NCBI GenBank assembly: GCA_965649825.1
Contig: OZ287697.1
Location: 496,001-560,000 of the forward strand
Origin: Penicillus capitatus
Taxonomy: Eukaryota > Plantae > Chlorophyta
DNA: 64,000 nt
Reading direction: 5' to 3'
Below the pieces are notes generated by a model. It saw only the letters and a program-made list of their open reading frames with translations, was not told the origin of the DNA and did not search any database. Both the position numbers and the translations under genes were made by a program. Below are positions 13,152-53,622 of the stretch, one piece after another. Position 1 is the first letter of the stretch. The number at the start of each line of letters is the position of its first letter.

Positions 13152-13174
13152 TCTCAAATTTTTCCCTCTGTCTG

Positions 13175-21191: not shown

Positions 21192-24100
21192 TTACTGAAA
21201 AAGCTGGTAGACATTCTTCAAGTGTGGCATCACAGACTGAACATGTTGGAAAGCAGTGTGATTTATCTGACCGGCATAGAGCGCGTCGTAAAACATCTTC
21301 AAAAAACACAGGCGATCGCTGTGGGGAATACTCCCATGATCATCTCCTCCTTCCAAACACAGAACAGCTGAGGCGCCCGATCGGAGAAAACTCTGAACGA
21401 GATCATCCGACAGATGTCGCGTCGAACTGATCACGGCACTCTTGATGAGCGCGTGAAGACTGGGAATGTCGCGCGGTCTCACGATCTCATCCGGATCTGA
21501 TCTCGCAAAGAGATGCAGAGATGCAGGTACAGGATAGTGAAATTCCTGTTGTGCCATCCACTGACAGTAACCGTCACCATAACGGAACAATGCCCGATGC
21601 TTTAGCGCTTCGGCCAGAGAAATGTCTTCCTCCACCCCAAGGTTCGATTTTAGCGTCGCCGCTTCGGGACCTGATGGCAAAGATGCCTGTGGTGCTCGAA
21701 CAATAGTATTGGGGCGTACTTGGATCGATGACCGACCAGAGCTTCGTAGACCATCGGAGGATGAGTTGACTGTTGTCTTTTGTTGTCTCCATGTCCAGGT
21801 GCACAGCTCCCATCTGTCCTGCAATTCTATTTGAAACTGCCTGCAAAAACGCCTTCCCTGTAGAACAGCAACATTCCCACTCTGTATCGCAAACACACAA
21901 ATGGAGGACCTTGTACAGCTGGAGCAGCAGCGAGAGAGGAGAGACGGAAATCTTTACAACAGGCCTCGTGAGATAAGACGTGCCCTTGGTGCACATCGAC
22001 TGTCCCTGCACTGTAGTCCAAGAAATGTAGTGGATGGCACGTCTGCTCTTCATCTCCTGATTCTCTGAGTGCCCTCACGATCACCAGTGGACGTTGCTCT
22101 CTCCATAAGGAACCGTTGGAAATGGGCGCTATGGTCTGATAGGTGTCTTTTCGAGCCATCAGAATTTCTGCAGCTTTGGCAAAGAGGGATGCATTTTTCT
22201 CGATGTAATCCATCGTAGCCGCTTCCAAGCTGCTCCATTTCTCGGCATCCAAGTCATCCAAGGCCAAATCGCATCGCTTGTCCACAGGATTGAAACGAAA
22301 GTAATTCATTTCTGGCAGCATCGTTGTCATCAGAGACATCGCCTCGTGCGTGCGTTCAACGCTGCAGGAGCTCTCTATCAATACACTGCCATTCTCGATG
22401 AAAGAGGCACTCGATTTCTCCCGTTGAGCCGCAGGAACCGCCCCCAGACCGACAGAGATCACACAGTCAATGTCCTTCTCTGGCCACAGAAGCTTCGCCT
22501 GTTGGACAGCCAATGCTGTTGGATTGTTCGCTGTGGTCGCACCATCCTGAAAATGCAGACCGTCTAATTTGAAATCCTCAAAGAAATATGGCGCCGCCGA
22601 TGAGGCACGGACGCCTTGCCAGAGATGAAACTTTGAGCTTCCCAGCGACGAATCGGCTCGCATCTTTGCCGATGTCTTCTCGACAGAGAATTCATAATTC
22701 CGAAACAGAAACGGCATGGCTGGGATGATGCTGGTCAGCGTAGAGGCGGCAAAGACCTTTGGCCCTCCCAGCACAGCTGAGTCAATATAGAGAGGCCCCG
22801 TTGCCTTTTCTTCTAAGGAACGGCACATCTCTTGCAGCAACAGCTCAAACGTCGACGCATCGTGTTTGCAACCAGCCATCACAACACGCAGTCCTTGTTG
22901 GCCACTTCTGTACATACGGATTAAACTGTCCTTCCATCCAGTCTGCTCCTCCTGGTGCGCCTGATTGAAGACACGGTGGCCCAGTTTCTTATAGATCTCA
23001 TCGCATTGCTGCAGAGAGTACTTCAGAATGCCGAGCGATACAGCCAACATGGCGCCGGATGAGGTACCGCCGATGAGATCAAAAAGATCCCAGATACGAC
23101 GGCCCGTTCTGTTTTCCAGTTCTTGCAACATCTTCACCGCGGCGAGTCCTTTCATACCACCTCCATCGATTGCCAGAATCCGAATGCCTCGATTCTCTCG
23201 AGGCGGTCTGCCAAGAATAGCATCGACGGCATCGTGTTCGCCCAAGACAGACAGACAACGACAGGCCAAGAGACGACTGCGCCGATCGACACTGGGAGAG
23301 TTGCTGCTGGCCAGATCCTTGAGTGAGGTCTTCACATCTGTTACGGAAAGCAACACATGTCTATTCTCCATAGCGAAGGCGAGATTGCCCAGCGTCTCGA
23401 GAGCGCGATGCCGGACGCTTGTCTTGATAGAAGGGTCGATGAAGGATCGCAGCTTCTTCACGAGTGCCGGAGTGAGCAGCGTCACGGCAATCCCATCAGA
23501 CGTCATCGCCAATACGGACAGAGCCTTGAGTGCATAGGTCTTCGTTTCCGGCCTATCCGATTCCAAGACGGTCAGCAGCGCGTCCAAGATGCCGTTCCTG
23601 ACCAGCGTTTCCGCCGTGGAGACAGAATGGACGATCAGCCCTATCACTCTTGCCGTCTGTTCCTGTACGACGCTCTGAGGACTGAGCACCATGAGAATGA
23701 GTTGCTGCAGCGGAGCACCCGGCTGTTCCAGAATCGCATCACAGTTGATTCGGAACTCAGCCAATCGACCAAGAGCGCCAACCATGAGTGGATGCTGACT
23801 GGAGCTGCGACTGAAGAGAACAGAGAAGAGTGGATTGAGCTTTGTACCGCAGGCCAATGCCGTTGTCCCTTCAATCGTCACTTCAAACTGTGAGTAGGAG
23901 CTGTCCGACCACACACGCAGATTCATAAGCGACAGCGACCGCAGCTCGTGGCAGACAGAGAGCTCCGGAATGTACTTCAGCGGATTTCCATACAGCTGAA
24001 GCGAATGCAGTTTGGGAAACTTTCGCAGATCCAAGACCACCGTCGAGATGCAATTGAACTCCAAATTGAGATCTTGAAGATGACAGCAATCACACAAATC

Positions 24101-32215: not shown

Positions 32216-33076
32216 CCCATAAGGCTACTATACATTGTGTAGCTTCTCTTGTGCTCTACATTCCATGTTTGAGAAAAACACATGCTGATACTATCGTCCG
32301 TTCAAAAGTTACGTGTTTGAGGATGGTGCTGTGATATGGCGAAGCGAGATTTATAATCGCGAGCGCTATTCTTCGATACTCTGTTCTTCGGAACATTTCT
32401 GCTGCTTGAAATCTCTGTGGTGGATCGGCAGATTGGTCTTCAGAAGATAAAATCGATATACAGTGATGATTCTATGGTGCAATGACGATGGTGAACCGAT
32501 CGCGCGTGAAGTCGAAATCCGTTGGACCTGCATCTAATAACGCAATCTACGTGGATATGCGCTATGCCGGGCAAGTGAACTGGTGCAGCGAACAACGGAG
32601 CTATCTCCGGCCGTGCTTATCAAGTCGATCCTATAATTAGGTCGAAGTTGGTGCAATCCCTGGCCATCGGAGAAATGGCAATAGCAACATCAACCTTGTG
32701 GCGCCGCCTTGAATTTTGAAAACGAGGATTCCGATCACTTTTGCGAGAAAGAAGTAGCGGTGCACAGAAAAAAAAAACTTCGACGACCCGCCATCATGCG
32801 ACTCGAGATATACTGTCCTTTACCTCACGTATAGTTGAAGCTGGTAACCAAAGGATTCACTTGAACACTTCATGAGCAGGACGGGCGCTCTTAGAAATAC
32901 AGATCGCTATACGAGCGCGTACACTAGCTCAAATGTAGTCGAGAACGACTTGGGAACAAAGCAAGACGTAAGGTGGATTCAATAAAAGATTCAACATACC
33001 AACTTTGAGATTTCTCAACTTACGTCGCGTTTTTACTCAGTTTTCGTCGGCTTAAGGGGTCAAAGGTGAAAAGGAC

Positions 33077-33287
33077 AAAAGTTTTTGTCCGGGTGGTGAT
33101 GACCCTATCGTCGGCCCCCGAACTCAGCGCGACGTTGTCCTTTCCCCGCCGTAACCCATCCAACTCGGCGCGGGCTCGCCAGACTCAACCGGGTCAACTC
33201 TGATGGGACACCCTCCTCTGAGTCCGGCGCAGGAATCGAACCCCCGCGGTCGTACTTCTCGAACTGGTCCAACTGCACCATCCGCAT
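33077..33287 (-). ncRNA. Putative Pol III unit (tRNA-derived SINE-like), about 210 nt; second copy at about 38462-38672
   Basis: A box TGGTGCAGTTGG (33269-33280), B box GGTTCGATTCC (33232-33242), and the first T4 run at 33077-33080 inside the hairpin GGACAAAAACTTTTGTCC. No complete cloverleaf. Confidence 0.45.
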
Positions 33288-33381
33288 TCGGGTCGATCCC
33301 CACAGTCGAGAAGACGCCGTCGCCAACTTATGCGCACCCCTGACGACTCTCCCGAGCACTTCCTGACGACTTTGCGGCCGT

Positions 33382-34194
33382 TGTCGTGTTCGTTGACGGA
33401 CAACGGGTTGACGACGAAGGCGTATAGCTTACAAAGACTATTTGTACAATGATTGTAAGAATTTATATAATCCTTTGGACAGCTGCACGAAGGTGGACAG
33501 CTGTCCACTGACATGTGCCCACCCCCTTTCCGTTGTGCAGACTCCGAATAATGCGAACGGAACACATTTCACGATAGTCGGGATGTCATCAGGCTGGCCA
33601 GGAGTCGAACCAGGGCCATCGTCACGTGGCTTCTCCCTCTGCGGCCCATTCGCCGCAGCTTTGTAGCTCTTACGTCTCTGAGACTTCAGCGCCGACTCTG
33701 GAAATTCGAACCGTACTTCACAGCGACAACACGTCCGTGGTGACCCAAATAGAAAACGTAAACACGGACAAAGTAACAACGAACGTAAACACAACAATGC
33801 GCAACAGCACGCTTATCGCAGCGTGAAACTGAAACGCAGCAACTCGGACGGTGGAACTGAAACACAACAACTCGGACGGTGGAACTGAAACTTAGCAGCT
33901 CGGACGGTGGAAGGTGGAACTGAAACACAGCAGCTCGGACGATGGAACGAACTACAGACTGCAGGTGGTAGGTAAAACGCTGTCACAACGGTCGTGTCTT
34001 GGAAAGTCTTCAGTCTTCGATGACGGGATTCTATCGCCGGAATCTTTGTCGCTCCGAAACCATGTCGTGTTCGTTGACGGACAACGGGTTGACGACGAAG
34101 GCGTATAGCTTACAAAGACTATTTGTACAATGATTGTAAGAATTTATATAATCCTTTGGACAGCTGCACGAAGGTGGACAGCTGTCCACTGACA
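33382..34194 (-). mobile_element. Non-autonomous miniature LTR retrotransposon (TRIM), 813 bp
   Basis: Identical 132-bp LTRs (33382-33513, 34063-34194) with TGTC...GACA ends. PBS-like TGGTTTCGGAGC (34051-34062), PPT GGAAAGGGGGTGGG (about 33518-33531), and TSD CCGT (33378-81, 34195-98). Empty site at 38763-38766. Confidence 0.95.
33827..33947. repeat. 28-bp tandem repeat, 4 copies, inside the TRIM
   Basis: AACTGAAAC(N5)A(A/G)CTCGGACGGTGG units start at 33827, 33855, 33883 and 33918; the third unit is lengthened by a 7-bp duplication. Confidence 0.93.
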
Positions 34195-34819
34195 CCGTCC
34201 ACCGTGTGCCCGTGACGACTTCACCGACGACTCCCTGACGACTTTGTCCACCGGTCTACTGTGTGCCCGTGACGACTCTCCCGACCACTTCGCCGACGAC
34301 TTTGTCGGCCGCCCACCGCGCGCCCGTGACGACTTCGCCGACGACTACTTTACGACCTTTGTGACAACACGAAAGGCGTAGAGATTGTGAGGAAAGCTAT
34401 AATGAGACCCTTCTCATTGTTACTCTGCATTGGTATTTTTTACAATTAGCATTCTTGTCATTTCTATGTCGATCTATGTGTGTGCATGATGCTCTGGATG
34501 CAAAAGAAAATCATCCACTGTAAGTGAAGAGCAGCGATGTCCATGACTCATTCTTTCTTCGCTTAACCTGCGAAGTTCCTTCTTGCGGAAGAGGGGTCAT
34601 GCGAAGGAGGTTCAAACCAAGTACGATTTCCGTCTACGATCGATAGATCAAAAAAAGTCCTCGAGATAAACTCATTTGATCAAGATTTTCCCGGAAAACC
34701 ATTAACCGCTACTTCTAACGATGTATCTATGCTCACATCCGACGACGTCTTAGGCACGTTAAAGAGATAGATCTCTGCGAAAAAGATTCGACATCGCAAA
34801 AATCATTTTCTTGCACTGT

Positions 34820-35807
34820 TCACAGTTCCACCATTTTGCTGCGATTCTTATCGACCGCAGCTTTGCGGCCAGCGTCATCTTCCACCATTTCCTGCTCATT
34901 ACATTGTCTCTTCGGATGTACAACTGACAGACAATGATAGGTACCTTCCTCATAGCGCCTTCAGGAACATCGATGCCTTTCCGCGTTGCCTCTCTTGCGT
35001 AGATGCGTTTCATCCAGTCCTGCGCATTGACAGATGGCCACGTCAATGACAATCTCCTCTCACAACGGTCACTTTGATTGAGGGAAACTCGTCGACGTCG
35101 ATGGCAGCGTGATCGGCATACAGCACCCAGCAGAAATTGGCGATATCTGCTAGAGTAAATTGATCTCCTGCCAAATACTCGTGATCTTTCAAGCGGCTCT
35201 CCAGTACGCCCAAGAGACGTTTGCTCTCATCGTGAAAGCGCTTCTGTCCGTATGGCACCGGTTCGGGTGCTGCGTGTATGAAGTGGTTTGTTTGTCCCAT
35301 CATGGGACCCACTCCTCCCATCTGAAACATCAGCCACTGGATCACTTCGTATCGCGCATTTCCCTCTTTGGGCAGTAGAGATCCGTCACCGTAGCGTTCT
35401 GCCAAATACATCATAATGGCACCGCTTTCGAAGACAGACAGATTTCCATTGCTATGGTCCACTGCGGCAACATGGTTTGGAAGGAAGTAGACACGAACCG
35501 ACTCGCACCTATGGCAGGAATGCGGCCGTTGGGGTTGATTTTGAGAAACCAGTCCTGCTTCTGCTCCTTCTCGCCGAGTTTCATATTGTACACGTCGTAC
35601 TTGATCCCGAGTTCTTCAAGAGTGACGGAGGCTTTAAAACCATTCGGCCTGGGTGCGCTGTAGAGAGTGATAGGCGCCGCATGTGCTGTAGGCAAGATCA
35701 TCAGTTTTACGGTGTTGGCAATCGGTCGTGGCAAGAGGCTATGAGACTTGATGCGACGCCTTAAACGAGAACGAGAATGACTAGCTCTAAGGAACTCACC
35801 TCGACAT
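34820..35807 (-). CDS. Glutathione S-transferase, Ure2p/YfcG (Nu)-like class
   Basis: ITLYSAPRPNGFKASVTLEELG, INPNGRIPAI, VFESGAIMMYLAE, WLMFQMGGVGPMMGQ, YLAGDQFTLADIA. Start and last exon are approximate. Confidence 0.92.
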
Positions 35808-36235
35808 ACCGACGCGTTTCTCAAAAAAAAAAAAAACGCATCGTAGGTTGAGAATCGTACGGAGCTGAGGGAATAACCTGCAGCACGTGCAGCGGAAAGT
35901 CTCTGCATCGAATTGGATTGGATGTGCATTGGTTAAACATGTGCGCCGTGTTCAATCGTTCAAATCGTTTTCTTATCGTTAGAACGTCACCATCTGCTCA
36001 AGAAGACTAAGTCCTGCGCTCAAATCATGTTAAGTGAATCGCCAATGCTTCAAAAAAATCGAAGCATTTTTGGCTTCGATCATCGTTTGTATACGGACCA
36101 GAGGGAATTCCACTCGGCTGAGATGTGTTTGTTTTAGTGCCAGAACTGAAGAATACACGCAATCGTCCATCGAAACGGAGCCGTCAGTTGGGATTGCGGA
36201 TTTAGGGCGTGAAATGTGCGAAATGCGAGCCCCGT

Positions 36236-38004
36236 ATGTTTGTACAGGTAGTAAGAGGAATGTCATACCGAAGTGCCGTTTCCACATCGAAGGTTTCTGT
36301 TAGGGGTCTGCAAAGCGGCCCCGCGGTAAATCCTGAACGCGTCGTCCGATGGAAGGGGCCCTCGGCAAACACGAACAAACCCGTTCTCTATTGGTCTGTC
36401 TCCTGAAACACTTCCCAATACTAGACAGTCAGTCACCGAAACAGGATGTCAAGAGACATACGCGTCTCAGATAACTGGGCCCTGCTGCATGCCGTGGATG
36501 AGGCGCAGCGCACCAATTCTCCTCTCGCCACCGTCTTTACTCTGGTCACCATTTGGTGCCTCGTTCATTCGTGGATGATTCGTTTCTGCAGGTCGACGAT
36601 TTTTTGGACCGAGGCGCACGACAGGCGTGCTTTATGCTGCGAGGGCTGCAGTTAGTGGAGAGGAAGCTGAAGGAGAAAAACATTCCGTTCTTCTTGTTGC
36701 GGGGAGATCCCGGACAGACGCTGCCTGAGTTTGCGCTTCGATGCAAGGCACGTCTCATAACCATGGACTACTCTCCGTTGCGTGAGGCACGGAAATGGAA
36801 GCATGCTGTAAGCAGAGATATCTCTTCTATGTCGGAATGAGAGCTCCTTCAGGTTATGGACAACACCGGCTGCGCCTTGGAGGAAGTAGATGCTCACAAT
36901 GTTGTACCCGTCTGGCTAACGAGCTCAGTACGCGAAAAGGCGGCTTTCACCATCCGTCCGAAGATTCACTCGAGACTCGGTCAGTTTCTAACCAACTTCC
37001 CTCCGATGAAGCCTCTTCCCACAAACGCCTGGCCTGCAAGCTGCACGGCAGATCCAATCGACTGGGACGCCTTGCAGGAGGAGGCGCGGCACCGCGGGGC
37101 GGATATTCCCGAAGTGTCATGGTTGGTGCCAGGGGAAGATGCAGGGAAAGACGCTCTGGCCGCCTTTCTGCAGAGGAGAAGACTTTCATTATATGCTCCG
37201 AAGCGCAACGATCCAACTGTCCCAGAGGCACTGTCAGGATTGTCCCCCTATCTCCACTTCGGATTCTTGTCACCGCAGCGAGCGGCATTCGAGGCACAGA
37301 AGCAGCGCCAACACCTTAAGTCTGACTATTCTCTTGACCGAGCCAAAAGAGTTGCGAGCGCTGTAGGGAGAGTGTCGACAAATTTTTGGACGAACTCATC
37401 ATTTGGAGAGAGCTCTCGGAGAACCTCTGTCACTACGAGCCTCGCTACGATTCCCTGGAAGCAGCGGCTCCTTGGGCCAGGCAGACGCTGCAGGAGCACC
37501 TTGCAGACAAACGAGAGTACATGTACACGAGGTAGGACACCGCCCTTTGTCTACTCAATGCAGAAACGAGCGAAGGGAGGAGTTCGAAAAAGCGAGGACG
37601 CACGATAATCTGTGGAATGCGTGCCAAAAAGAGCTGCTCTATGCGGGAAAGCTTCATGGCTACATGCGCATGTACTGGGCCAAGAAGATCTTGGAGTGGA
37701 GCGCCACAGCTGAGGAAGCTCTAGATACGTCGATCTATATGAACGACAAGTATTCGCTTGATGGGACGGATCCTAACGGATACGCCGGATGTCAATGGTC
37801 CATCACCGGCATTCACGATCGAGTAGTCCCCGCATTCGCTGTTGCCATACAACGTCCATTGCTGCTTAGGAATTTCACGAACGCCCAGTAACTGGCAAGA
37901 TCCGTCCGATGACGTTCCGCGGATGCAAGAATAAGTTTAACGTCGATGCGTACATCGCCCGCGTTGACCGCCTCGAGAAGGAATACAAAAAACCGCTAAT
38001 CTGA
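36236..38004 (+). CDS. PHR: Class II CPD photolyase
   Basis: [69 protein letters not shown]. Several short introns. Confidence 0.95.
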
Positions 38005-38456
38005 TTGGTTTCCAAAGGTCGATTTTTTTTTTCTAGTCTCCGCTGTAGATCAAAGATGATTTATTCTTTAAAGTATTCTTTGCTTGTATGTTCTTGTTTC
38101 TGCTTCACACAGTGAGCAAATCGGATTGGATACGGTGTGGCGCAGCCGAGGCCGCGAAGGCCCTGGCATGTAGACCACGACTTTAAGCTCTTCGGCAAAG
38201 GCGTGACAATCCGAGTGTTTTCCAATCAATACTCCGAAAAGGAGACAGCAGCGAAGAGAAAAAGTAAGAATGTAGAATAGGAGCCAATGCAAATGACTAG
38301 TGTCTTATTTACAAGAAATTTGTAAACACAAAACAGAGTCCGACTGTTTTGGCTAGTTCTGCTTATCGCATCGCGTAACGTCGGACAAGTTCGGACGGAA
38401 ACGAAAGCAGTTTTTACAGCCCTGTTTTTAGAATGCAAAAAGAATGAAAGGGAAAG

Positions 38457-38872
38457 AGGACAAAAGTTTTTGTCCGGGTGGTGATGACCCTATCGTCGGC
38501 CCCCGAACTCAGCGCGACGTTGTCCTTTCCCCGCCGTAACCCATCCAACTCGGCGCGGGCTCGCCAGACTCAACCGGGTCAACTCTGATGGGACACCCTC
38601 CTCTGAGTCCGGCGCAGGAATCGAACCCCCGCGGTCGTACTTCTCGAACTGGTCCAACTGCACCATCCGCATTCGGGTCGATCCCCACAGTCGAGAAGAC
38701 GCCGTCACCAACTTATGCGCACCCCTGACGACTCTCCCGAGCACTTCCTGACGACTTTGCGGCCGTCCACCGTGTGCCCGTGACGACTTCACCGACGACT
38801 ACCTGAAGACTCTCCCGACCACTTCCTGACGACTTTGTCCACAGGTCCACCGTGTGCCCATGACGACTTCTG
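38457..38872. repeat. Host repeat copy 2 (uninterrupted; carries the empty TRIM target site)
   Basis: Reads ...GACTTTGCGG-CCGT-CCACCGTGTG... continuously, where copy 1 has CCGT-[TRIM]-CCGT. Confidence 0.95.
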
Positions 38873-39239
38873 ATGATTTTTGAGAAACGCAATTTCTCCT
38901 TCGTCAGTTTTGAACGATACTCTCGCAACTTTTTGGAAGCCTTGCTTAACCGAAACAGGACAACTGCTGAACTTTCTCTGTGCAAAGTGAAACTCTGCTA
39001 GTCTTTTGATATTCGATATGCAAATTTGTTATGCATCAAATTCGAGACTTAAATCTGAGGAACTCAAACGGAGACCTTCGATTGTAGTACCACTGCGCGC
39101 ATTTTAGATTTTTCTTTCGATCTCGTTATGTAAAAGAATACAGCAAAGTTTGTTTCACTTCGGTTCTTGAACAATCCAATCCTTTGGAACTGGGGCGTTT
39201 AAGTTCATTGTGAATCACCCTTCGACGCTCAGGGCTCTT

Positions 39240-40730
39240 ATGATGTACATGGAAAATGTTCTGGAGTGGTTGAAGCTGAATGTACAACTTCCCGACAGCC
39301 TTTCAGGCAGCGAAGACGGATCGTTGTAGAAGCTGGATGTCTGCGTCGAGGCATTCAAATCCTGAAGAAGTTAAAAAAGGCTGGCATCGTGTCGAGAACT
39401 TTACAGAGAAATCCTGCGATCTGCTTGGAAAGAAGAATGCCAAGCGGTTGTTTTTCCTAATCGATGCTTTTGTGGATGTTGAAATCGTACTGGGTTTGAT
39501 TGAGACAGACAGAGAAGGCATGTTCAGTTGAAGTGGACGGATACACGCGGTTCTAGAAATGGCCGGAGGGCGAGACATCACGCGGCGAATATTGACAGGT
39601 GCATTGAACCTTACACGATTCTGAAGAGAAGCGATGTTTATCTCAGACACCAAGTGATTTCTTGCTAATGGGTACAAAACAGATGAAGCGTTCGAAATCC
39701 TTATCTACGAGATCGAAGCATGCCAATGAAAAGACGAGGTGAAAGAGAGACATCCGTGGATATGGGAAAAGGAGATGATTACTCTCATCAGAGAATGCAT
39801 CAAATGGTCACTTAACACAGTGATCATCCGCACGATCTTAACAACAGGAAAAGCATAGTACCATTAGAGACGAAGGGACTTGCAATGGGATACAGTCTTG
39901 GTCCCTGCGCTGCATGTGTGACTCCGTAGGCATTGTATGAGAAACCGGCAAAGAAGCACTTTATGAGAGCATGTGGATACATGGACGTTATATAGATGTT
40001 GTGATACTCATCACACGCCAGGAAAGTACTCTTAATTGGAAAGAAGAAGTGGCTGTATGGCTGAAGGTCACATATACCGACAGATTGGAGACCATCAAAC
40101 TCACAGCGACCCATGGAATGAACTCCGACAGCGTGCCTTTCCTCTTTCTAGATATAGAAACGGACATTTAGAAACGGACATTGAAGGGAGCATCAGCAAC
40201 AAGGTAGATACATCTTGTTTTAGTAAACCACCAGTACGTTTTAGTATATCGAGCAATCCAGAATACATCCGTTCAAGATGTTTAAGGCCATTGTGCAACA
40301 AGAAACCAGATGCATGATAGGCGACAACATTAAGAATGAAAATGTTGTTTAAACTGCTGAAAGAAGAGGCAATTCGTTACATCAGAAGAGACTACCATGT
40401 TAAAGAATTGTGGCAATAGATACATTATGCAGTGAAAACAAATGCAAAAGGGAAGGTTTGTCAGAAGCAACGCAAGGGATTACGACAGTTTGAAAGAAGA
40501 TAGCTGGAGCGTCGCAGAAAGCCCTTTGATCAGAGCAGTCGGATATGAAGATCCCGTCAAACACATTCAACAAAAAAACCAACAAGATTAAAAACCGGGA
40601 TCAGTTTCTGCCGTTAAGAATACATTTTTCTCATCAACTACGAGCCTGGAGCCCGGAAACAAGTTGCACGAAGCACACGAAGTAGCTTGTAGAAACTTGT
40701 CAATCAGTAGAAATCTTGATCAATAGCAAA
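39240..40730 (+). mobile_element. Decayed Penelope-like retroelement (PLE) reverse transcriptase
   Basis: Frameshifted motifs in the expected order: FISDTK*F...DEAFEIL, LIRECIKWSLN, TKGLAMGYSLGP (39876), RYIDVV (about 39986), SVPFLFLDI, IHPFKMFKAIVQQE, VACRNL. Many stops and frameshifts. Confidence 0.75.
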
Positions 40731-43007
40731 CTGACAGGCTTTAAGTGGTGATCTTTATTTTGAGTTAGAGTGGTTTCGAGCTCGCCAAACTAACTACTTT
40801 TGGAGGTAGACCTTGAATCGGGTTATTCAAATCTTCCGATCGATGTTAATTTGCAACCTGTTCGTTTTTCACACATGAGAAGACCTATACCTGCGAGATC
40901 TTGCCTCAGGGCTGGCCAGGCTCTACAGGACTTTTTGACAGTGGAATGAGCGACATGTTCGTGATCTTGATGTAGTGTCGTACATAGACATTTGATTGTC
41001 GGGGAGGCGAGATCCGCCATATTGCTTTCTCCATACGGATAAACCGTCGTTCTGTTGTAGCGGACCCGGTCATCGCACACGAGGAGAATGCTAGAACGTC
41101 AAACCAAGCACCCTAGTTACTCCACGCTGAATAAACCATGTAGGCATTTTCATTGAATGCACGCTCGTTCAACAAGAGTAGTAAAGCTTTAAAAGACATT
41201 CATTTACAGATACTCTCCCATTTCCCACTAGGAATTATCCCAACTTTCAAGACGCATGTACTAGGAGGCGACGAACGTTTGTTTAAAGGAGGAGTTTGTT
41301 TGGTCAATCGCCTCCAATATCCTCCTGGTCCGGCGGAACGACTATGCGAGCGCGATCGATTGCCACAGAGTCCAACATGAAAACGTCATGAACGGTAAAC
41401 TGGTATCAGTTACAATATGATTCCGAAAGGAAGCAGGTCAGCGCCAACACCGTTCAAGGCATGTCAAGTTTATGAACGCTCTTGCCTGATCTGTGATCTA
41501 CGGACTGACGACTTGTTGTTTAGAAGCGAGGACGTGTACAGTAAGTAGGTGGATTGCAGTGGTAGATAAAAGTAGTTGGAACTTGTTTGTGATTCCATGT
41601 GCGATGAGACCTCAGACATACATAAAGCAGCATCGTTTCCTTGCTACACAGACCTGTTAAGTCGAAATAAAGCGCGTTAAGTTTTATCAGAGTGCTCTGC
41701 ATTAAAACACCGCAAGTACAGTGCCGTCATCGAAAAGCGGTAGCTTTAGTAGAGTCGAAAGCTAAAGCTTCCTTGTTTAAAGCGCGAGTTAGATGAACAG
41801 GAGAGAGAGAGTAGTGAAGTTGCTAACAGGACAGAAGAAGATAATAGTAACACTAGCATCGAGGACAGTACTTTTAAGCAGTGTGCTGTCGACGGATCGA
41901 TGATTTGCTGAAGGCGAATGCGTCAGGCACACACGAACTGTTGAAACATTGCGCAGAATAAAGCACATTCCAAAAATCGTTGTTCCTTAACCAGGTAGAC
42001 GGCCAACGTCGTTTTCTAGCTGCCATAGATTCTCGACTGTCGTCGACGAAGGCACTGCATGCTTTTAACCACCTTTTCCTGAGTGGCAGAGCAACCTCGA
42101 GTACCTAAAGCACTCATTATCCCACGTGGACCAGAATGGCCGTTTTCAGATATCGGCGATAAACAAGTCATACAAGTGCGTGACTGGTCACCACTGAGCG
42201 AACACATGTTATTTATTGTTCAGAAATCTCGATCTGCGCGTCGTCTTACTGCATGCAGATTATGATTAATCACCGCAACTGTCACAGACTGCACACTCTT
42301 CACACCTTGCAAAATTCGCACGAGCGGAAAAGTAGCCTAGCCGATGATGATTCGTCGGTTGCTCTGATCTCTTCACATGGTGCTTGCTTCCCATTTCCTA
42401 AAGTACGGACTTTCAATCTTCGAAGGGCTTTTTGCTAAAGTCTCATGGACAGCAATGATCGTCAATCAATAGGTGTGGTATTCGTGTATGTTACCTGTTG
42501 AGAATGACAGCTGCTCTGCAAACGACAGACGGATGATGGAGTTGCATCTCTTACTCTTCGTCACACTGAAGCATTGGGCGGAGGTGCAGTGAAACAGACT
42601 GAGTGATGAGGTCGAGCTGAGTTCGATCCGAAACGCGTGTCAACTCCCAAAGTTTCCAATATCTAATGCGTCCTTTGTTGGGAATTCTCTTCGGTCGAAG
42701 TCGGAAATGAGGTGATGATGCGTGAAGAGACATGCATCTTACAGATGCGAATGGTTATTCCTCAATCGCTGTCAGCTCCCTCACTCAAAATCACGGCAAC
42801 GTTTTGTCGACTGCTCGGTGCGACAACGAAGCCGAAGAATTTAAAGAACGGACAGAAACGGAAAAGACAGGACCGACAGTGAGCCGCGGTACCTGTTTTG
42901 GCAGACGTGCTATGTGGTTGTTAGGCTTCTTTCGTGGAAAGACTCGTCGTATACCTGTCGTTAGCGATTGAACTAACTCCTAAGGCGGTTCCATTGACCT
43001 AGGCGAC

Positions 43008-46000
43008 ATGAGCTCAGAGGCGATACCAAATGCAGAACCCCGCGAACAGCCGCTAGGGGGAAATGCTAGTGAAACGGTTAACGTCGATTTGTCCGAACAC
43101 TCTGACAATCCGCACGAAGCCCCTAACTCTTCCGACACTCTTGCGATGATCGAACTACACTTGTACAGGCGACATGACCATGACTATGAGAACGAAACGA
43201 CGCTCTGCTGCCCTAAATCAGTATAGACAGATCTTTAAGTGAGAGATCGTCGAGAAACTCTGTTTGTGGATTTCAGATCACCATGAATGATATACTGCAG
43301 ACCGCTATGGATGACATAATGCAATATATTCCGTGCGAGATTGATCACTACATTTTCGATCCTGTTGGGAAAAGGGTCTTCCGGGAACAAGACCAAAGAA
43401 CGCTCGGCGAATTGCAGATCGAGAACAATGCTGTATTCTTTCTCATTCCTATCAAGGTTCGTTGGCGTCCATCAGCTGTTGCGAGACAGATAAGGTGTGA
43501 ACGGTAGACAAAGAGCGGGGAATATTCTGGCAGAGTGGGACTAAATAACATCGGAAACACATGCTACATGAATGCGAGTCTGCAGTGTTTGCTGCACTCG
43601 CCGGAGTTGATGCATTACTTCCTCACTGAGAAATACAAAGAAGAAACTTTAGAAGACGACTTAGATGAAGATGCGTTGAGACTCGTAGATGCTTTCTGCG
43701 ATCTCATGCAAAACGTCTGGCTGGTAAGACGGACGGCGAAGGACAGTCATGAGGGTGTGATTGCCAGACGAACCAGAGAACATATCATCCTGAGTATTTT
43801 TGGCATGAACTTAAAGCGTACAATGAGGAATTTGACAACCACTATCAGCATGATACAACAGAATTGGCCGAGACAGTGCTGGAGGGCCTGATGGAAGGCT
43901 GCAAGAGAGCCACGATGTTTGAAGCCTGCTCTTCGGAGGTTGTGCCATCCTTGTGTTCTGCTGTTTTTTATTTCTTTAGCAGGTGAAGAATGACAGCGAA
44001 ACGTCCGACGAACAGATGGCCGCCGAGTGTTGGAGACAACACAGGTGAGGAAATGAGTTGTTGATCTGAGCGAGAATCTGTGCGATTCAGGAATAGGTCG
44101 AATTCCTTCATAATGGACAAGTTTCATGGGCAATATTGTGTGCTGACACAGTGTCCAGACTGTCCCTTCAAATCGAGTATGTTTTGTTCTTTCGCTGTGC
44201 TCCACGTAGGCATTCCCCCTCCCAGTGTGCGCACCATCGTCTTTACGCTGATCGAAGTCTGTGGGAATCAGCCGCCAAAGAAGTATACCTTGGAGTTATC
44301 TTCAAACATATCGGTGGAAGACCTCTATCACGAAGCAGCGAAGCTCATTGATTGCAGGGAAGACAGGCCTTGGGAGCATCTCTGCTTCGTCCTAAAACGA
44401 GAGGAATTCATATTTCTTCAGCTTTCGGATGTGCTGGAGCGTATAAGGTACAGCAGGATAAGTACAGACGCGTTTTGTGCCCACAGATGCCTGGTTGTTT
44501 AGTGTGCACGACAAGTTGTTGCTATATTCCTACACAGGATGTGAGTATGGGCCAGCATCAGGCGGCCAGAAGACGTGTTTCATACATATGAAGGATTTTT
44601 ATGTTCCATACTACAACTCCCACCACTCCACTCTTTGCTACCGGGAGAAACGGGAATTTGGATATCCTCTTGTCCTGTGGCTACCTCACGACGACACAGA
44701 CGATTGGTCATTCTCCACAAAGAAGCGCACATTCCAAGGTAACCTAGGTGTGTCACCTGGCCTGCCTGCCATTTGCTTTGGATATTTACACGAAACGGAT
44801 GTGTTCTAGATATCTTGGAGAACTCTTTACGTCCCTTCAAGCGTCCACATATGGCTGCTCTGCAAGAAGGAGAGGAACAGAAAGACCACAAACGAGAGTC
44901 TCTGTACTTGTCCATCGAGCAGGATGCCATGGAATGTGAGGAATCTGGAAATGATCAGATGCCTGGACAAGCAACGTCTTCAGTGTCTGCCCACGGCTCC
45001 ACCTCCAACGACCGAATGGATGGCATTGGTAGAAATAATTCTATGAACGATCAGGTCGGGGAAGGCTCTCATCGCGAAGAATCAGTTGCCTCTACGAGAT
45101 TCAAACTTTACGATTTGTGCGATATCGACCGCACCGATGAGAGAGGCGAGACAAAGACCGTTCTCGTCGATTGGACTACAAATGCAGAACAGCATTACAA
45201 TCTCGAAGCACTGAGGCAGTCATTGAACAAAACAGCCAAAGGCATTAAAAATCGCAAAATGCTGAAGTGCTGTGCACTCTATGCTTGCTTGAATCACGAA
45301 TTCGATCCTCATGGTTGCGCTCCTGACGCAGACAGTTTATGGAATTGTCGTGGGTGCAACGAGAAGGTTAATGCAACCACTTCTTTGCGTCTCTGGAGAC
45401 TGCCTGATACACTGTTGATTGGACTGAAACGCTTTACGTACTGTCCAGTGAGCAGACGCTTGATTAAGACGTGTCAGTGGGTGAAATTTCCTCTCGAAGG
45501 TTTGGATTTGAGTAAATATTGTACATCCAAGGAAGGAGATGATCCTATTTACGACCTGTATGGTGTCTGTTATAATTCCGGAAGCACTCCTGAGTCAGGA
45601 CACTGCACAAGCAGTGTGAAATGTCATGATGGAAAATGGCGTTCTTTTAATGATAGCTGGGTGAAGGTTATTGATGAAGGAGACGTTGTCGCTGACGGAG
45701 CATGTCTGCTCTTCTACAGAAAGAGAAACTTGCAGAGTCCAAGCCAAAGAGAGATTTTGGAGCTCATGTTGCGAGACTTGAAACAAGAAGAACAAGCTGT
45801 TAAGTATTGCGATTCTATATTGAAGGCTGCAACACCCTCTGGAGACGCTATTGACGAGACTATACGCAGAGACGTTCATGAAAGCCATCAACTTGACGGT
45901 CACGGCAGTCATGAATACTTTAGAGAGCAAAGATATGAATCAGTGGAGGCAGGAAACGTGCATAGATCTGACGTTTTTTATGCAACCGAGAAGGGAGAAG

Positions 46001-46209
46001 TGGTTATGACAACTTCCTGGGCAAAGCAGAACGACGAACACCAAGTCAATGCTTGGTATCAAGAGTCAGATCCAATGCTTGAATCAGCTGTCGGCCTTTC
46101 ACTCGATTCAGAGAGAACGGGCATCCCGGCAACGGATACGGTGCAGATGCATGCGCCGTTTGAACGAGACATGTATGACTCCTTCCAACATGACAGTCGC
46201 ACCTCGTGA
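43008..46209 (+). CDS. USP paralog lacking the DUSP domain, strongly diverged
   Basis: GLNNIGNTCYMNASLQCL, QHD, CPDC and CRGC, YDLYGVCYNSG...GHCTS...WRSFNDS. Same intron positions as 13884-17893. The exons checked are in frame. Confidence 0.85.
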
Positions 46210-46918
46210 GGCCTTTTCAGATTTTGAGTCACTCTGTTCATTTGTTCGGGAAAGCGTTCTTTCATTCTTTTGGATCCATTCTGGCTGTTAAACAGTGCCA
46301 CGAGACTATCTCCTTTGTCAAACATGCTCGCTCTCTAAGAAAGAACGTTCTCTTCGTCCTCCCTCGCTGCTAACGAGACTCGCATCACGATGACGACTCC
46401 CTCTGCTCCTCTGCCTCCGAGCTCCTCCTAAACAGCAGAGAAGAGTGAAAAAGGGAAAGGTGCGCTGAGCAGTCCTTCTCGGTTCCCCCACCGGGTGGCC
46501 CCTTTCGGTGCTTACTTTTCGTCCTCGTCGTTGAGCCTAGACACATCACGGCTCGATCGAGCACCGGCAGCAAGGGAATCTGTACTTTGCCTTCTTGGCC
46601 GGAGGCGACGCTCGGTCGTCGGACGGATTCTGGCCTCCTATCTCCTGCTGGATTTCGTCGTTCAGTTCACTGACCGGCTGAAAGGCCATGTCCTCATCGT
46701 CTAGAACGCATTCTCTTACGATCACGGGGCTGAGGGTCCCTGCGTTTCCCACCTTCTAGACCGGACGCTGCCTCCTTGTCCGCCACGTGGATGGTCGATT
46801 TGACGGCGGGCTGATCCGATTCGGCATCCTCGAGCGGCTCTCCGCTCTCGATCCGTTGCCTTTCTTTTTCGAAGTTCTGCTCCTGTGTCTCCTGACAGGC
46901 GGCAAATGTCACCCATCA
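43140..46918. repeat. Right arm of the inverted duplication (partner 13175-17430)
   Basis: Reverse-complement alignment. Homology ends at 46918, inside a pinin intron. Confidence 0.92.
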
Positions 46919-47851
46919 AAGAGCCAGCAAGAAACGACCGCACCCGCCAGGAAGCGTGATCTGATGCATGGGAGTCCATCATGGCCTGAGTTGTCGTGCT
47001 GTGCTTTGCAGGGAGCCAGTAGATCGCTGGATGCGTGGAGGTTGACAAGAAGTGCAGCAGCAGTTCTCTGTGCTTAAGTCTCTTGGCGTATATCAACTGC
47101 AGTCCCTTTACTTTTCGCATCATGTCCAGCTCCTTCAGTTTCTCCGTCTCCTGCTGCCTGCCAGTCACATCATCCAGCCGTTCTGTCACATCACTGCATC
47201 TGCAGCGCCGATCCTCACTTCTGTTCTTCCCACTCCTTCTTCTGTTTCTCCCGCAAGCGGACGGATTCCTCAGCCGTCTTCTGTTGGGCGCGTCTTGCAA
47301 TCTCTTCTCGCTTTTTCCACTTTTCTGATTTCTCCACATTATCATTCTCTTCCCTTATTCCAAAGATATGTCCAGATATCTCGATCGAGGCCATAACGTA
47401 CCTGAATTTCTCGAGGGTACTGAGCAGGGATGAGAACATTCGCCTATTGCGATTCTTCATCTTTGGATCATCATCCATTCCGTGCGTCGCAGGACGTTTC
47501 AGAATCACTGGGGGTATAAAATCTCTCTACATTCACCACCATATGCCTCGGCATCTTTCTATTCCCCTCACCTGAGCATCATCTCTATACGGTCCAGCAA
47601 TGGATGAGGCCACACGTGGCTCCGGAACATTCCTTTCAGTCTACAGTTCTCGTCTGTCGACTATCCTTAGTTTGTTGTCCGATACGCACCGTCGGCACTC
47701 CAGTGTCATTCCAGCGTCCTCCGTCTGGCGGCTGGAAGCTTCTTCCAAAGAATCGCCCGCGACCGCGTCCACGAAAACGTCCTCTCCCACGACCACGTCC
47801 CCTTCCATATACCTCGAAGAGACGGTCGTTGGTCTGGATAGTGTCAGCCAT
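46512..47851 (-). CDS. PNN: Pinin/SDK/MemA protein
   Basis: RG-rich N-terminus, KNRNRRMFSSLLSTLEKFR, coiled coil, FLSTSTHPAIYWLPAKH. Confidence 0.88.
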
Positions 47852-47978
47852 CAGAGTATCGGAAGCACGACAGGAGACAGGAAAGTACCTGTCGGTATTC
47901 GTGATCGATCTGGCGGATTTCGGCCGAGAGCTCCTGCACGTTGAAGTCCATGGCGCGAAAGGGCGGAATGAGACGGTG

Positions 47979-49428
47979 ATGTTTTCATTGATGCAAGAAT
48001 GCGGATGTGCACGACTGGGACGCCTAGCGACGCAGCGTGGCACCCTAACCACGCCAGCGATGCTCCTGTCGGTTCGAAAGGGCGATCTTCATGGTCTGAC
48101 GCCGGAGGAGATCCACTCTCTTGGCCATCTGCCAGGAATCATCCTCAATCCTTTCGACTTGTGTGAAGAAGGCTGAAAAACGATCAGAGAGAAAAGTGTG
48201 ATGTAGTGTGACAGAAGCTGTTCAGAAGAACTTGGATGGAGATGGCCGACAAACAGGATCCGAGCTTTTCAATTTGAACTCTCCTTTGACCATCGCAGTG
48301 CCCAAAGATGAGATGCAGAATGAATTTCTACCGTCGAACAATGACAAGGGCGTCTCCGTCATGCTCAGAACGGGAAAGAGACAGGTAAGACGCATGTTAA
48401 AGAGTGAGAACCAAAGGATCCATGGTTACATGTCAAAAAGATCACACCCGCTATGTACAGCACTCTGATCCGAAAGATACAGCCAGATATCAGTACCTGC
48501 CTTTGGGATGAGGCAATGCACTGGAATCGTTTGTCGTGATCTGAAAAGCGTGTGTGTATTCCGAAGGTTCCTGCCAATGCCAGCGACAAGAGAGTACAAG
48601 GTGCCGTTTTTCGCACGGCGAAGGTCCAAGGATGGAAAGTGTGTCGGATAAGGAGGTCACTTTTTCGCTGTAGTGGCTGGAGGACGCGATGAAATCGGAA
48701 AGGAATGAGGATCGGTTGACATGGGCCAATATTGTGGGTGGACCTTCGCCTGATCTCCGTCGCCTGTCTGCACAGAAGGTCAACGATTTGAAGCCGGATG
48801 GTTATGTACTCGGTGGTTTTGGCGGCGGCGGCGGCGGAGTCACCTCACCGTATAGCGATGCTGCACTGGAAATCACCCTTTCGCATCTCGATCCTCAGAA
48901 ACCGAGACTGATGACAGGCATTGTACGTCAAGCCGTGTGCATCCACACCATAGCGGACTTTTATGCTGTGATGGCAGCTGTCTCCGATCGACATGTGGAA
49001 GGTCATTGGATTGGGAGTGGACCTCGTTGACAGCAGCTTCATCTGGGACATCTGTTCTAAGGGACAAGCTCTGGTACAAGAGCCCACAGAACAGGACAAC
49101 GCATTTCGTTATCGGTTGCTCAATATGTACGACACGGCTTTGCAGTGGGTCGCCTGCACATTCTGAACGCTGCTGTCCACGTGTGTGTCTGCACAGAGGA
49201 GATGCACGTCCATTGGCACCGGATTGTCAGTGTCCCTGCTGTCAACGCCATTCGAGAGCCTATGTCCATCATTTGCTGACCGAGAACGAAATCTTGGGCA
49301 CCGTGCTACTGCAAATGCACAATCTATTTTGGATCTTTGCATTCTTTCGCCAAATTCAATTGTACATGCAACGAGAACAGCGGCTACAAGAGTTTGTTGT
49401 CGAAGGCCCTCGTACTTTATGCCCTTGA
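47979..49428 (+). CDS. QTRT2: Queuine tRNA-ribosyltransferase accessory subunit
   Basis: ARLGRL...TTPAMLL, GYVLGGF, zinc site CQCPCCQRHSRAYVHHLLTENEILGTVLLQMHN. No DSGG catalytic motif was seen. Confidence 0.88.
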
Positions 49429-49898
49429 CAGTTCAGTATCAAGTGAAAAGAATATTCCAAGTAAAGCAACAATTGAAGGTAAACACACACAGGCTTATGC
49501 ACGTCCGTTCACCTTGTGAGTTCATTATGCTTGGTTCAATCCCATTATGAGATTAAGAGATCAAATATATCAAATGGTATCGCACATAAGATCCGACAAA
49601 AGTGTGCAACAGACAACTCCGTGCCGATTTATTATTGGACAAGGACGGAGTGCGATGCTTTATTCTGAGTCTTACTGGTCGTCTGAGAATTCGGCCCAGA
49701 GAGCGACCAGCTCATCTTATTCATGAAATACTGAATGTCCGTGTTAGTGGGGACTTCAGTTTCTTGAAAGTTGAAAAAAGCGACTAGTGAAATGCATTTC
49801 CAAGTCTAATCTAAAAACCTTTTGCACAAAGCGAGTCATCATCATAGATGGAAACAAGATTGCAGTCGCGCTTTTATTCAGTTCCGTACAGGAATGTG

Positions 49899-51836
49899 TT
49901 ATGAAGTGCCAAAAACAAAATGAGCGTACTTATGCGTATTGAGAGGAGATGACGAGCCATCTGAATCTGTGGCAGTCGAATCAAATAGCGGAGGATAAAC
50001 GTTTCTTGGAAGGCTACTGGTTTTGCAGAAATTGTTGTTGTTGTTACTGCTGCTGTTACTGCTGTTGTTTATGAAGTGAGGTTGAGAACATGCCAAAGAT
50101 TCGATGAATGTAAAGTGCTTTGGAATCTTGGTGCCGCTTCCCACGTCCAAAAATAGTTGAGCACTTTGATTCGCCATGACCCAAGAGCATAGACTGCGTC
50201 TCTTCAGATCCAAGGCGTCGATGAGGTAGTGCTCGATATACGCACCCTGACACGATATCTCTTTGACCGACAGCACGAAGCTCCCAGGCTCAGAACTGAT
50301 CCGAACGAGAAAAGTTCCGGGGACCTCTTGTTCAAGGATTTCCTCGCTTTTTGTGCGATCGACCCAGAAGGGACAGATCCTGACCATGTCATCAGAACAC
50401 CACAGGAAGTTCTCCCTCTTCAGAGAGACAAGGCAAGCCAAGTACCACTTTGCAAACTTATCGAAAAGCCGACGATGGTCTTCGACGCTGCTCAAATACC
50501 ACGGCTCACTCACTAGATAGAACACGCACACGCATACGATGCCATTTGGCATTGGCCAGCGATTGACTACTTTGTGTAGTGAGCCCCTTTATTCCAAGCT
50601 TCACGCCAAGGAATCCCAGATCATAGAGCGTCAGGCCTCGATTGAAGTGGCACTGGTTGTATGCAGCGAGGATCCATTCCCTGACATCTTGCGGAATAGA
50701 CTGTTGCTGCGAGCCTCCAGCAGGGTCCTTATTACATGAAGAGGAAGACTGAGGTATCTAATCACAGCAACACACCACAGCACAGCACAGCACGAAGTCA
50801 GCACACACACGATGGTGGACGGAATCAGAGCGCACCGTCTGAGACGTTGTCAGCGAGGATCTGTCAGTTATTTCCAAGAACGGATGGTCATTAGCCAGTA
50901 TGCAGCAAGCTTTGCAGTACTGGTCCGTTTTTCTGCAAAGCAGCCAAGAGAACATCATCTAGAGGATGGATGGCTGTGTCCTGTGCCGTGTTTACCTCGA
51001 AAGGACGATCGTAGGACGTTTATAGATAATACAGAGGATATCATCTCGAACACGAGCAACAAACAGCAGCCACCTCAACGCCATCCTTGACGAAGTCTTG
51101 AAGTGCATGTCTACAAATTCGAAAGTCTCTTGGACGCTCGTATACGGTTCGTCCTTATTCGTTTGGCGATTCTGTGCCAAACACACCGTCATTCATCTCA
51201 AGCCTCGGCATAAAGCATTCAGAGCAGAGATGTCATACCTCCAGGCACTTGTAAATGGAGGCATTGGCTAAACCGCTATCGGATGGGAGGGTGGCGAAGC
51301 TGTTTTGCGATGCTTGTTTCAGAAACGACGCCAGAGAGTCTTTCGTGAGAGAGTACACATTCACCTTGATCGGCACCTGAGAACAATGCTTCCCAAAACA
51401 CGCTGAAATTTGAACCTGTCAGCATCCACCGACCCATCCATGGTCCATCCCATTTTTAATGTATCTCCAGACCTTAAACGGCGGCGAGCAAGCTTTCTTT
51501 TGAGTGACTGGCTTTCGGAAAGAAGGCGGAGCTTGAGAAATGGACATATCGACCGTGAGCAAGTCGTCCATCTTCACAGCCGATGCCCGAGTGCACGCCT
51601 TTTCTTGACAGTTCCATTGCCGTGACTCGACAACTGCACACACAGACCCAACAACATTCGTCTCAATTCTGCCGTCACTTATCAGCCGAAGGCAATTACT
51701 TTTTTGCTCAGGAAGATAGCAGACGAGGCTGAGCTGCTCCTGAAGTATACAGCCAACGTGAGACACGTCTCAAGGATCCCTGCGGTACGGTTACTTCGCG
51801 GGTTGGCATTATGTCTGCTTTTTGCATAGAGCTCAT
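49899..51836 (-). CDS. STAT-like SH2-domain protein (plant STATL/SH2 domain protein-like)
   Basis: SH2: ICPFWVDRTKSEEILEQEVPGTFLVRISSEPGSFVLSVK...IEHYLID. Linker-like EWILAAYNQCHFNRGLTLYDLGFL..KL and FDKFAKWY. Upstream SISQAPPSFRKPVTQKKACSPPFKVQI. The 5' exons are approximate. Confidence 0.8.
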
Positions 51837-53587: not shown

Positions 53588-53622
53588 AATGCATCATCAT
53601 GAACTGAACGATCGTAGATGTC

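Follow-up and report, generated by a model that had tools for sequence, protein, structure and literature searches.

TRIM-type non-autonomous LTR retrotransposons have been listed by Gao et al. (2016) from two green algae, with 6 subfamilies in Chlamydomonas reinhardtii and 5 in Volvox carteri. The criteria used there were a length below 1-1.5 kb, two or more complete copies that differ in their TSDs, and the lack of retrotransposon proteins (PMC4717578). An earlier note on the DNA analyzed here had called TRIMs little described in green algae, which is a fair statement as long as the families of Chlamydomonas and Volvox are kept in mind (PMC4717578). Plant and green-algal TRIMs (Witte et al. 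2001; PMC4717578) are shorter than 1 kb and have short LTRs, an initiator tRNA-Met PBS, a PPT and a TSD of 4-6 bp; they encode no retroelement proteins, occur in several copies with different TSDs and include recent polymorphic insertions. The element described here resembles them in all these respects, but the likeness is structural and no sequence relationship is claimed. It differs from the plant TRIMs of PMC4717578 in its TSD (4 bp instead of 5 bp) and in a PBS that appears adapted to a U1:A72/G4:C69 variant of the initiator tRNA.

Three other groups of small retroelements are also comparable. Plant retrozymes (PMC5680766) are non-autonomous LTR elements with a 4-bp TSD, a tRNA-Met PBS, a PPT and a noncoding core of 300-600 bp, as is the present element; however, they carry a hammerhead in each LTR and have LTRs of 300-400 bp, whereas the LTRs found here were 132-165 bp long and had no hammerhead. 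The Cassandra, Helenus and Ajax TRIMp3 elements (PMC10886601) belong to the same class of miniature LTR retrotransposons mobilized in trans, and animal Helenus also gives 4-bp TSDs, but the present LTRs have a TATA box and not a Pol III promoter derived from 5S or tRNA. MRC1 and the other non-autonomous Chlamys Penelope-like elements (PLEs) of Chlamydomonas are likewise small, noncoding green-algal retroelements with terminal direct repeats. Chlamys PLEs are active, have pseudo-LTRs that arise from partial tandems, are biased toward microsatellite targets, lack a PBS and a PPT and have unclear TSDs (PMC8557442, PMC9940879). In contrast, the present element has a canonical PBS and PPT, TG…CA ends and exact TSDs. 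The yeast elements Ty3 and Ty1, which integrate in a Pol III-directed manner and use initiator tRNA-Met as primer, share initiator tRNA-Met priming with this element, but no evidence of Pol III-adjacent integration was found for it.

Here, we describe an 813-bp element at positions 33382-34194 of the window (the whole 64,000-nt stretch that was analyzed). We identify it, with a probability of roughly 93%, as a recently inserted non-autonomous LTR retrotransposon of the TRIM type in an uncultured alga of the green lineage.

Materials and Methods

Related contigs came from the ENA metagenome assembly ERZ25074695 and were reached through protein look-up; structural support for the insertion consists entirely of assembled contigs. 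Further copies were found by searching a spurious 119-aa ORF of the element against 1.8 billion protein representatives. Loci L006 and L007 were counted as one insertion, since both are located within the near-identical 5-kb core of a duplication spaced 25 kb. For the primer, JGI metagenome contigs were scanned for tRNA-shaped genes in which the 3′ strand of the acceptor and the discriminator pair with the PBS.

Results

Structure of the element

Self-comparison of the window gave two direct repeats of 132 nt each that were 100% identical (Table 1). Their starts were spaced 681 nt apart, which gives a unit length of 813 bp and a core of 549 bp between the LTRs. The element has its sense orientation on the minus strand of the window, on which the order was 5′ LTR, PBS, leader, 28-bp tandem repeats, PPT and 3′ LTR; the plus-strand reading had neither a PBS beginning with TGG nor a purine tract. 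On the sense strand, the 5′ LTR (34194→34063) started with TGTCAGTG and ended with ACACGACA, i.e., with inverted TGTC…GACA ends, and the PBS (34062→34051) began at the very next base. The 3′ LTR (33513→33382) was directly preceded by CAACGGAAAGGGGGTGGGCACA. Each LTR contained TATATAA at LTR position 45, TGTAA at position 81 and a 12-nt palindrome, GGACAGCTGTCC, at positions 8-19. TGTAA is the customary poly(A) signal in green algae.

No Pfam domain was detected in the ORFs of the element (E ≤ 0.1), and in the longest of them, a sense-strand ORF of 119 aa, indels between the copies disrupted the frame. None of ten translated ORFs of the element had an exact database match. A search of positions 32800-34500 against Rfam (E ≤ 10) gave no hammerhead, 5S or tRNA-like RNA, and a motif scan gave no B-box within the LTR. 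The identical 132-bp LTRs, the TGTC…GACA ends and the TATATAA motif reported in the earlier note were confirmed base for base, and its statement that the element has no coding capacity agreed with the missing Pfam domains and the broken frame of the longest ORF. The note had also placed a PBS against one LTR and a PPT by the other; both were present, all listed features were at the positions given in the note, and the one correction was the assignment of the sense strand to the minus strand of the window.

Table 1 Coordinates of the element, its parts and the host repeat in the window
Feature	Position	Strand	Remarks
Target-site duplication, left copy CCGT	33378-33381		Single CCGT at paralogous empty site
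3′ LTR, 132 bp	33382-33513	-	TGTC…GACA; TATATAA 33463-33469; TGTAA 33429-33433
PPT GGAAAGGGGGTGGG	33518-33531	-	4 nt from 3′ LTR; invariant in three of three family members
Internal region, 549 bp	33514-34062	-	Without conserved ORF, without Pfam domain
Tandem repeats, 28/35 bp, 3-4 units	33823-33947	-	Within internal region
PBS TGGTTTCGGAGC	34051-34062	-	Abuts 5′ LTR; 12/12 complementary to green-algal initiator tRNA-Met variant plus CCA
5′ LTR, 132 bp	34063-34194	-	Equal to 3′ LTR; TATATAA 34144-34150; TGTAA 34110-34114; palindrome GGACAGCTGTCC
Target-site duplication, right copy CCGT	34195-34198		Sequence outside element end
Host repeat copy A (insertion target, outside element)	33041-33381, continuing 34195-34362		Repeat comparison
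Host repeat copy B	38426-38870		Repeat comparison
Paralogous empty target site	38763-38766		In host repeat copy B

Insertion site and age

Copy B of the host repeat read GCGGCCGTCCAC at 38759-38770, with one CCGT only. When the flanks of the element were joined with a single copy of the TSD, they matched this paralogous site without a break across the junction, and this continuous match confirmed both the 4-bp TSD and the uninterrupted pre-insertion site that had been proposed beforehand.

The related contigs contained both states of the locus. Contig ctg257545_15x_l (locus L002; 9,215 bp, 15x) was 100% identical to positions 33353-42567 of the window and carried the element. Contig ctg340516_41x_l (loci L001, L003 and L004; 1.46 Mb) aligned collinearly with the window (96.7-99.98% identity), and in it (L004) window position 34209 was joined straight to 33379, with the element absent and the junction reading GCGGCC-TCCACC. 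This junction is an allelic empty site, or that of a very close strain, and the insertion is polymorphic. LTR elements are not excised precisely, so the absence of the element is the ancestral state.

Divergence between the two haplotypes in the flanks of the insertion was 2.3-3.3%. For an insertion of the same age as this divergence, the probability of observing identical 132-bp LTRs would be approximately 0.01-0.05, and for this reason we place the insertion after the split of the haplotypes. The insertion is recent, as its identical LTRs and its polymorphic state between haplotypes show, and transposition of the family probably continued until recently. The very young age suggested previously was thus upheld by the identical LTRs and, in addition, by the allelic empty site in the diverged haplotype contig.

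On one side of the element is a plus-strand WD40 gene, whose exon extends to 32215, and on the other a minus-strand GST gene (exons 35043-35701); the surrounding stretch is intergenic and rich in repeats. The element is approximately 0.85 kb downstream of these GST exons, and approximately 0.56 kb separates it from an 84-aa ORF call at 34759-35013. The possibility that host repeats A and B are themselves LTRs, belonging to a larger element, was set aside; the 4-kb interval between them contains GST and photolyase-like host genes. The proteins encoded by the ORFs of the window are of common eukaryotic types (patatin/ARM/LRR, UCH, RRM, citrate synthase, CofD-like, WD40, SH2 and Kazal). The citrate synthase shared 69-74% identity with chlorophyte proteins (Chromochloris, Polytomella, Coccomyxa and Botryococcus), and in a single-gene tree it grouped with environmental sequences. 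These data place the host among the green-lineage algae, above the level of class.

Other members of the family

Two unannotated ORFs, spurious calls like the query itself, were matched in the search with the 119-aa ORF, and their contigs carry further copies of the element. The copy at 9711-10452 of contig ctg340412_28x_l (locus L005) was 742 bp long and had the TSD ATGT; its LTRs of 128 and 129 bp differed by 7 substitutions in 125 sites (5.6%) and by 2 indels. The copy at 9475-10272 of contig ctg340446_32x_l (L006/L007) was 798 bp long, with identical LTRs of 165 bp, and its TSD was either GTATC (5 bp) or TATC plus one chance base. TGTC…GACA ends were present in both. Together with the window copy, there were three complete and independent insertions with different flanks and TSDs, and the family therefore comprises at least three. 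A third match of the same search (P0132) proved to be bacterial, a repeat surface protein with DUF7927/DUF11, and was discarded as irrelevant.

On each point of Gao et al. (2016), the family agreed with the TRIM class: the copies measured 813, 742 and 798 bp, there were three insertions, and no Pfam domains were found. The same was true of the structural features, namely TG…CA LTRs, a PBS adjoining the 5′ LTR, a PPT by the 3′ LTR and a TSD of 4-6 bp.

Alignments of the copies showed that the LTR was conserved over its initial 34-38 nt and its final approximately 50 nt, that the 12-nt PBS and the PPT were kept in all three copies, and that the leader of approximately 110 nt after the PBS was almost invariant across subfamilies. 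The U3 differed between copies by a 33-nt block, and the spacing from TATA to TGTAA was 36 nt in the window copy and 35 nt in the L006 copy, in which the U3 is different. The tandem-repeat units became fewer step by step, from the window copy through L005 to L006 (alignment gaps of 63 and 91 bp). The comparison thus shows that constraint acts on the LTR ends, on the distance between TATA and TGTAA, and on the PBS, the leader and the PPT.

Neither solo LTRs nor additional copies were present in the window or in approximately 120 kb of host loci, and a word-based search of 5.8 billion proteins gave no more ORF-bearing copies. The flanks of the L005 copy were unique, with no paralogous empty site in the adjoining 10 kb. 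An exact 23-mer spanning the LTR end and the PBS had 0 matches in JGI metagenomes, and a conserved 43-mer of the leader and a degenerate LTR-end/PBS pattern both had 0 matches in IMG/VR. No reverse transcriptase (RT) or integrase domain was detected in the larger window ORFs scanned (all but about 10, mostly overlapping) or, for the genes of the fetched loci, among their precomputed Pfam hits. The earlier note had advised looking genome-wide for copies, their TSD lengths and an autonomous partner; the searches described here yielded two more members, with the TSDs ATGT and GTATC/TATC, and no partner.

Primer tRNA

The scan for tRNA genes that pair with the PBS gave 55 loci, approximately 36 of which carried tRNA-Met(CAT) at the match. 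The dominant matching gene, TTCGGAGTGGCGCAGCGGAAGCGTGGAGGGCCCATAACCCTCAGGTCCCTGGATCGAAACCAGGCTCCGAAA, was identical on 24 contigs. It contained GGGCCCATAACCC, which gives three G:C pairs in the anticodon stem, and GGATCGAAACC, which gives A54 and A60; these are hallmarks of a eukaryotic initiator. This initiator tRNA-Met variant has T1:A72 and G4:C69, whereas plants have A1:U72 and A4:U69. The contigs that bear it belong to Trebouxia, as the neighboring SDHAF2 exon was 98% identical to that of Trebouxia sp. C0005.

In all three copies of the element, the PBS was complementary at 12 of 12 positions to nt 64-75 of the Trebouxia initiator tRNA-Met (with CCA added). It differed from the canonical plant iMet PBS, TGGTATCAGAGC, at exactly two positions, both of which are compensated in the Trebouxia initiator genes, so that the 10/12 match to the plant primer noticed previously became a complete one. 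No tRNA genes were found in the window (ARAGORN) or in five host loci (approximately 110 kb of related contigs), and the assignment of the primer, which draws on the tRNA genes of another green alga, is accordingly made at the level of a likely counterpart in the host.

A recently active element that keeps a perfect 12-nt match in its PBS suggests that the host itself uses the U1:A72 variant. Our tentative reading, to which we give slightly less than even odds, is that the PBS reports the primer of the host and that the initiator tRNA-Met used by the host has, as in Trebouxia, U1:A72 (and G4:C69) in place of A1:U72. The 3′ end of the host initiator tRNA-Met is then predicted to be …GGCTCCGAAA.

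Relation to Pol III genes

The insertion had been said to lie about 100 bp upstream of a Pol III A box, in a manner recalling Ty3 and Ty1. The motif exists: on the minus strand, the host repeat contains an A-box-like 12-mer, TGGTGCAGTTGG (33269-33280; 1 mismatch to TRGCNNAGTNGG), 101 nt from the insertion point and a perfect B-box, GGTTCGATTCC (33232-33242), 38 nt further downstream. These motifs are what would be expected if the host repeat were a Pol III unit and the element were targeted to Pol III genes, a reading that we consider very unlikely. No tRNA was detected in the window by ARAGORN, nor any tRNA, SINE or 5S in 32800-34500 by Rfam (E ≤ 10). With one mismatch allowed, A-box-like matches were as frequent as expected by chance (19 vs. 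18.9). There were three B-box matches, without strong excess (2 of 100 shuffles reached 3), and two of these were the two copies of one host repeat. The third (33601-33611, in the core of the element) was a point variant specific to the window that reads GGCTCGACTCC in both other copies, and it was rejected as a chance match. From a reading of the sequence, the putative T-stem and acceptor of the host repeat pair improperly, and the host loci searched contained no more copies of this repeat. The earlier note had also advised determining whether other copies lie upstream of tRNA or Pol III units; no tRNA gene was present within approximately 10 kb of the L005 and L006/L007 insertions, and the fetched loci lacked B-box motifs. 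Neither a tRNA nor a SINE was thus detectable in the vicinity of any of the three copies. Pol III targeting is therefore not supported, although three insertions are a weak test and too few for statistics.

Discussion

The structure of the element, read together with its relatives, bears on several other identities. TRIMs are thought to originate through internal deletions, a full-length ancestor could have left its traces in the leader and in the sequence next to the PPT, and few copies were found; all this would suit an isolated deletion derivative of an autonomous LTR retrotransposon that does not propagate as a miniature family. We regard this as most unlikely, since the three independent insertions fall into two or three subfamilies (LTRs of 132, 128/129 and 165 bp) and all have in common a short internal architecture whose deletion boundaries coincide, which indicates that the short form itself transposed repeatedly and diversified. 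Identical LTRs in two of the three insertions also speak against a one-off copy. An error of assembly or a simple tandem duplication might be suspected, given that the source is a metagenome assembly and that the carrier haplotype is a short 15x contig, but it is scarcely credible: the same structure was present in both the window and the L002 contig, three other loci on two other contigs had the same architecture with different flanks and TSDs, and the logic of PBS, PPT and TSD is beyond what misassembly can produce.

The remaining two alternatives concern other classes of small retroelements, and both are extremely improbable. In green algae, MRC1 was at first called a non-autonomous LTR element before it was moved to the Chlamys PLEs (PMC9940879, PMC8557442), so that such confusion has a precedent, and the internal tandem repeats of the present element would also be compatible with a non-autonomous PLE of this type, with pseudo-LTRs formed by partial tandem insertion. 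However, an exact PBS, a PPT by the 3′ LTR, TG…CA ends and discrete TSDs with empty sites are not PLE features. The insertions are outside (CA)n and (C)n microsatellites, neither 5′ truncation nor tail extension was seen, and we also count the lack of a hammerhead match in 32800-34500 (Rfam, E ≤ 10) against a Penelope-like identity. A retrozyme, or a TRIM with a Pol III promoter of the Cassandra, Helenus or Ajax type, was considered in view of the 4-bp TSD, tRNA-Met PBS, PPT and similar overall size of plant retrozymes (PMC5680766) and of two strings in the core of the window copy, CTGATGA…GAAA and a B-box-like 11-mer. Both strings are internal and outside the LTR, and neither is conserved: CTGATGA is mutated to CTGATGT in L005, and the B-box-like motif is replaced in both other copies, as described above. 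The hammerhead-like string was ruled out on the basis of this mutation and the null Rfam result; the same search gave no 5S or tRNA-like match, and LTRs of 132 bp without a ribozyme core contrast with the 300-400 bp of retrozymes. With no hammerhead and such short LTRs, a circular-RNA life cycle is not expected.

We thus return to a TRIM-type LTR retrotransposon, for which a life cycle can be proposed from its anatomy and from the established biology of LTR retrotransposons. Pol II transcription would begin approximately 30 nt downstream of the TATA box of the LTR, and polyadenylation would be directed by the TGTAA of the 3′ LTR, 35-36 nt from the TATA box; the position of the R region would follow from these two putative sites. 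The RNA may be packaged in trans, through the conserved leader of approximately 110 nt, by the Gag and Pol of a presumed autonomous LTR retrotransposon. The host initiator tRNA-Met, in its U1:A72 variant, would anneal to the 12-nt PBS and prime minus-strand DNA, the PPT would prime the plus strand, and the integrase of the partner would join the TG…CA ends to the target with a 4-bp stagger. On the same grounds, the family may still be active.

The family adds to a class that, among green algae, the literature consulted here reports from only Chlamydomonas and Volvox. It is a recently mobile TRIM that can be seen as a presence/absence polymorphism between haplotypes, and the insertion could serve as a marker for population work on the alga. 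The by-product concerning the primer is of greater interest, as it suggests that some green algae have an unusual initiator tRNA with U1:A72. The A1:U72 pair is described as almost universal in eukaryotic initiators, and the Ψ1:A72 of S. pombe is the single listed exception (PMC5393177). If the tentative reading of the PBS is true, a green-algal lineage would be the second exception to the A1:U72 identity rule of initiators, and the PBS of its retroelements would have coevolved with it by two matching substitutions relative to the plant PBS TGGTATCAGAGC.

Host repeat and haplotype divergence

The TRIM was inserted into one of two copies of a host repeat. These copies were in direct orientation, 5.4 kb apart, and 92-99% identical, and both were also present in the other haplotype. 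The repeat opened with the hairpin GGACAAAAGTTTTTGTCC and closed with 57-bp/11-bp tandem units; the interval between the copies contained a GST and a 250-aa ORF, as well as a fragment resembling photolyase. An old duplication, an unknown transposable element, and a gene-conversion tract are candidate origins for this repeat.

When window positions 32399-57996 were compared with the 41x contig lacking the TRIM (loci L004 and L001), we observed that divergence was a mosaic. The most diverged block coincided with a separate 15x contig (L002) and appears to be a region, either heterozygous or variable between strains, that the assembler resolved as a bubble.

Coordinates of features, with identity or complementarity where applicable
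Feature	Sequence	Position	Value
Host repeat, TRIM-carrying copy	Window	33041-33381 and 34195-34362	
Host repeat, second copy	Window	38426-38870	
Identity to 41x contig	Window	32399-33379	97.7%
Identity to 41x contig	Window	34209-38811	96.7%
Identity to 41x contig	Window	38719-53456	99.2%
Identity to 41x contig	Window	53001-57996	99.98%
Second tRNA-complementary stretch TTCGGAGCCTG	L006	10073-10083	11/11
Second tRNA-complementary stretch	Window	about 33540-33550, minus strand	10/11
Palindrome GGACAGCTGTCC (LTR positions 8-19)	Window	34175-34186 and 33494-33505	
Initiator-type tRNA-Met, T1:A72/G4:C69	L009	7540-7611	
Initiator-type tRNA-Met, T1:A72/G4:C69	L011	3062-3133	
Initiator-type tRNA-Met, T1:A72/G4:C69	L016	5963-6034	

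Duplicated segments

Two ubiquitin C-terminal hydrolase (UCH) paralogues were located inside the window (13171-17233 and about 44773-46209). The DNA of the second region matched that of the first at 79-95%, which indicates an intra-window segmental duplication. On the contig carrying the 798-bp family member (L006/L007), the segment at 7750-13000 was duplicated, with two copies 25 kb apart. These were nearly identical over approximately 5 kb centered on the TRIM and 3-20% diverged further out, a pattern that suggests a recent event, either gene conversion or a nested duplication.

As a separate observation, one long minus-strand ORF (window 21827-24097) joined LRR and armadillo repeats with a patatin-like phospholipase domain.

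Motifs within the TRIM

Approximately 25 nt upstream of the PPT, the TRIM contained a second stretch, TTCGGAGCCTG, complementary to the 3′ region of the tRNA that matches the PBS. Complementarity over 11 nt was reached by only 4 of 300 shuffles (L006); this second match could be due to chance. Near the 5′-end of U3, the perfect 12-nt palindrome GGACAGCTGTCC, with CAGCTG inside, was kept in all TRIM family members and is a candidate protein-binding site.

Variant initiator tRNA-Met genes

Among the JGI metagenome loci with tRNA-shaped genes pairing with the PBS (L009-L062), initiator-type tRNA-Met genes on contigs of Trebouxia, a lichen photobiont, carried T1:A72 and G4:C69. Besides the three genes listed in the table, such genes were found at about 30 others of these loci. 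Some tRNA-Met copies had an anticodon-loop intron (L012, L032, and L055), and other sequence variants were present at L010, L061, L049, and L017. S. pombe is the sole eukaryotic exception to initiator A1:U72 listed in the literature (PMC5393177).
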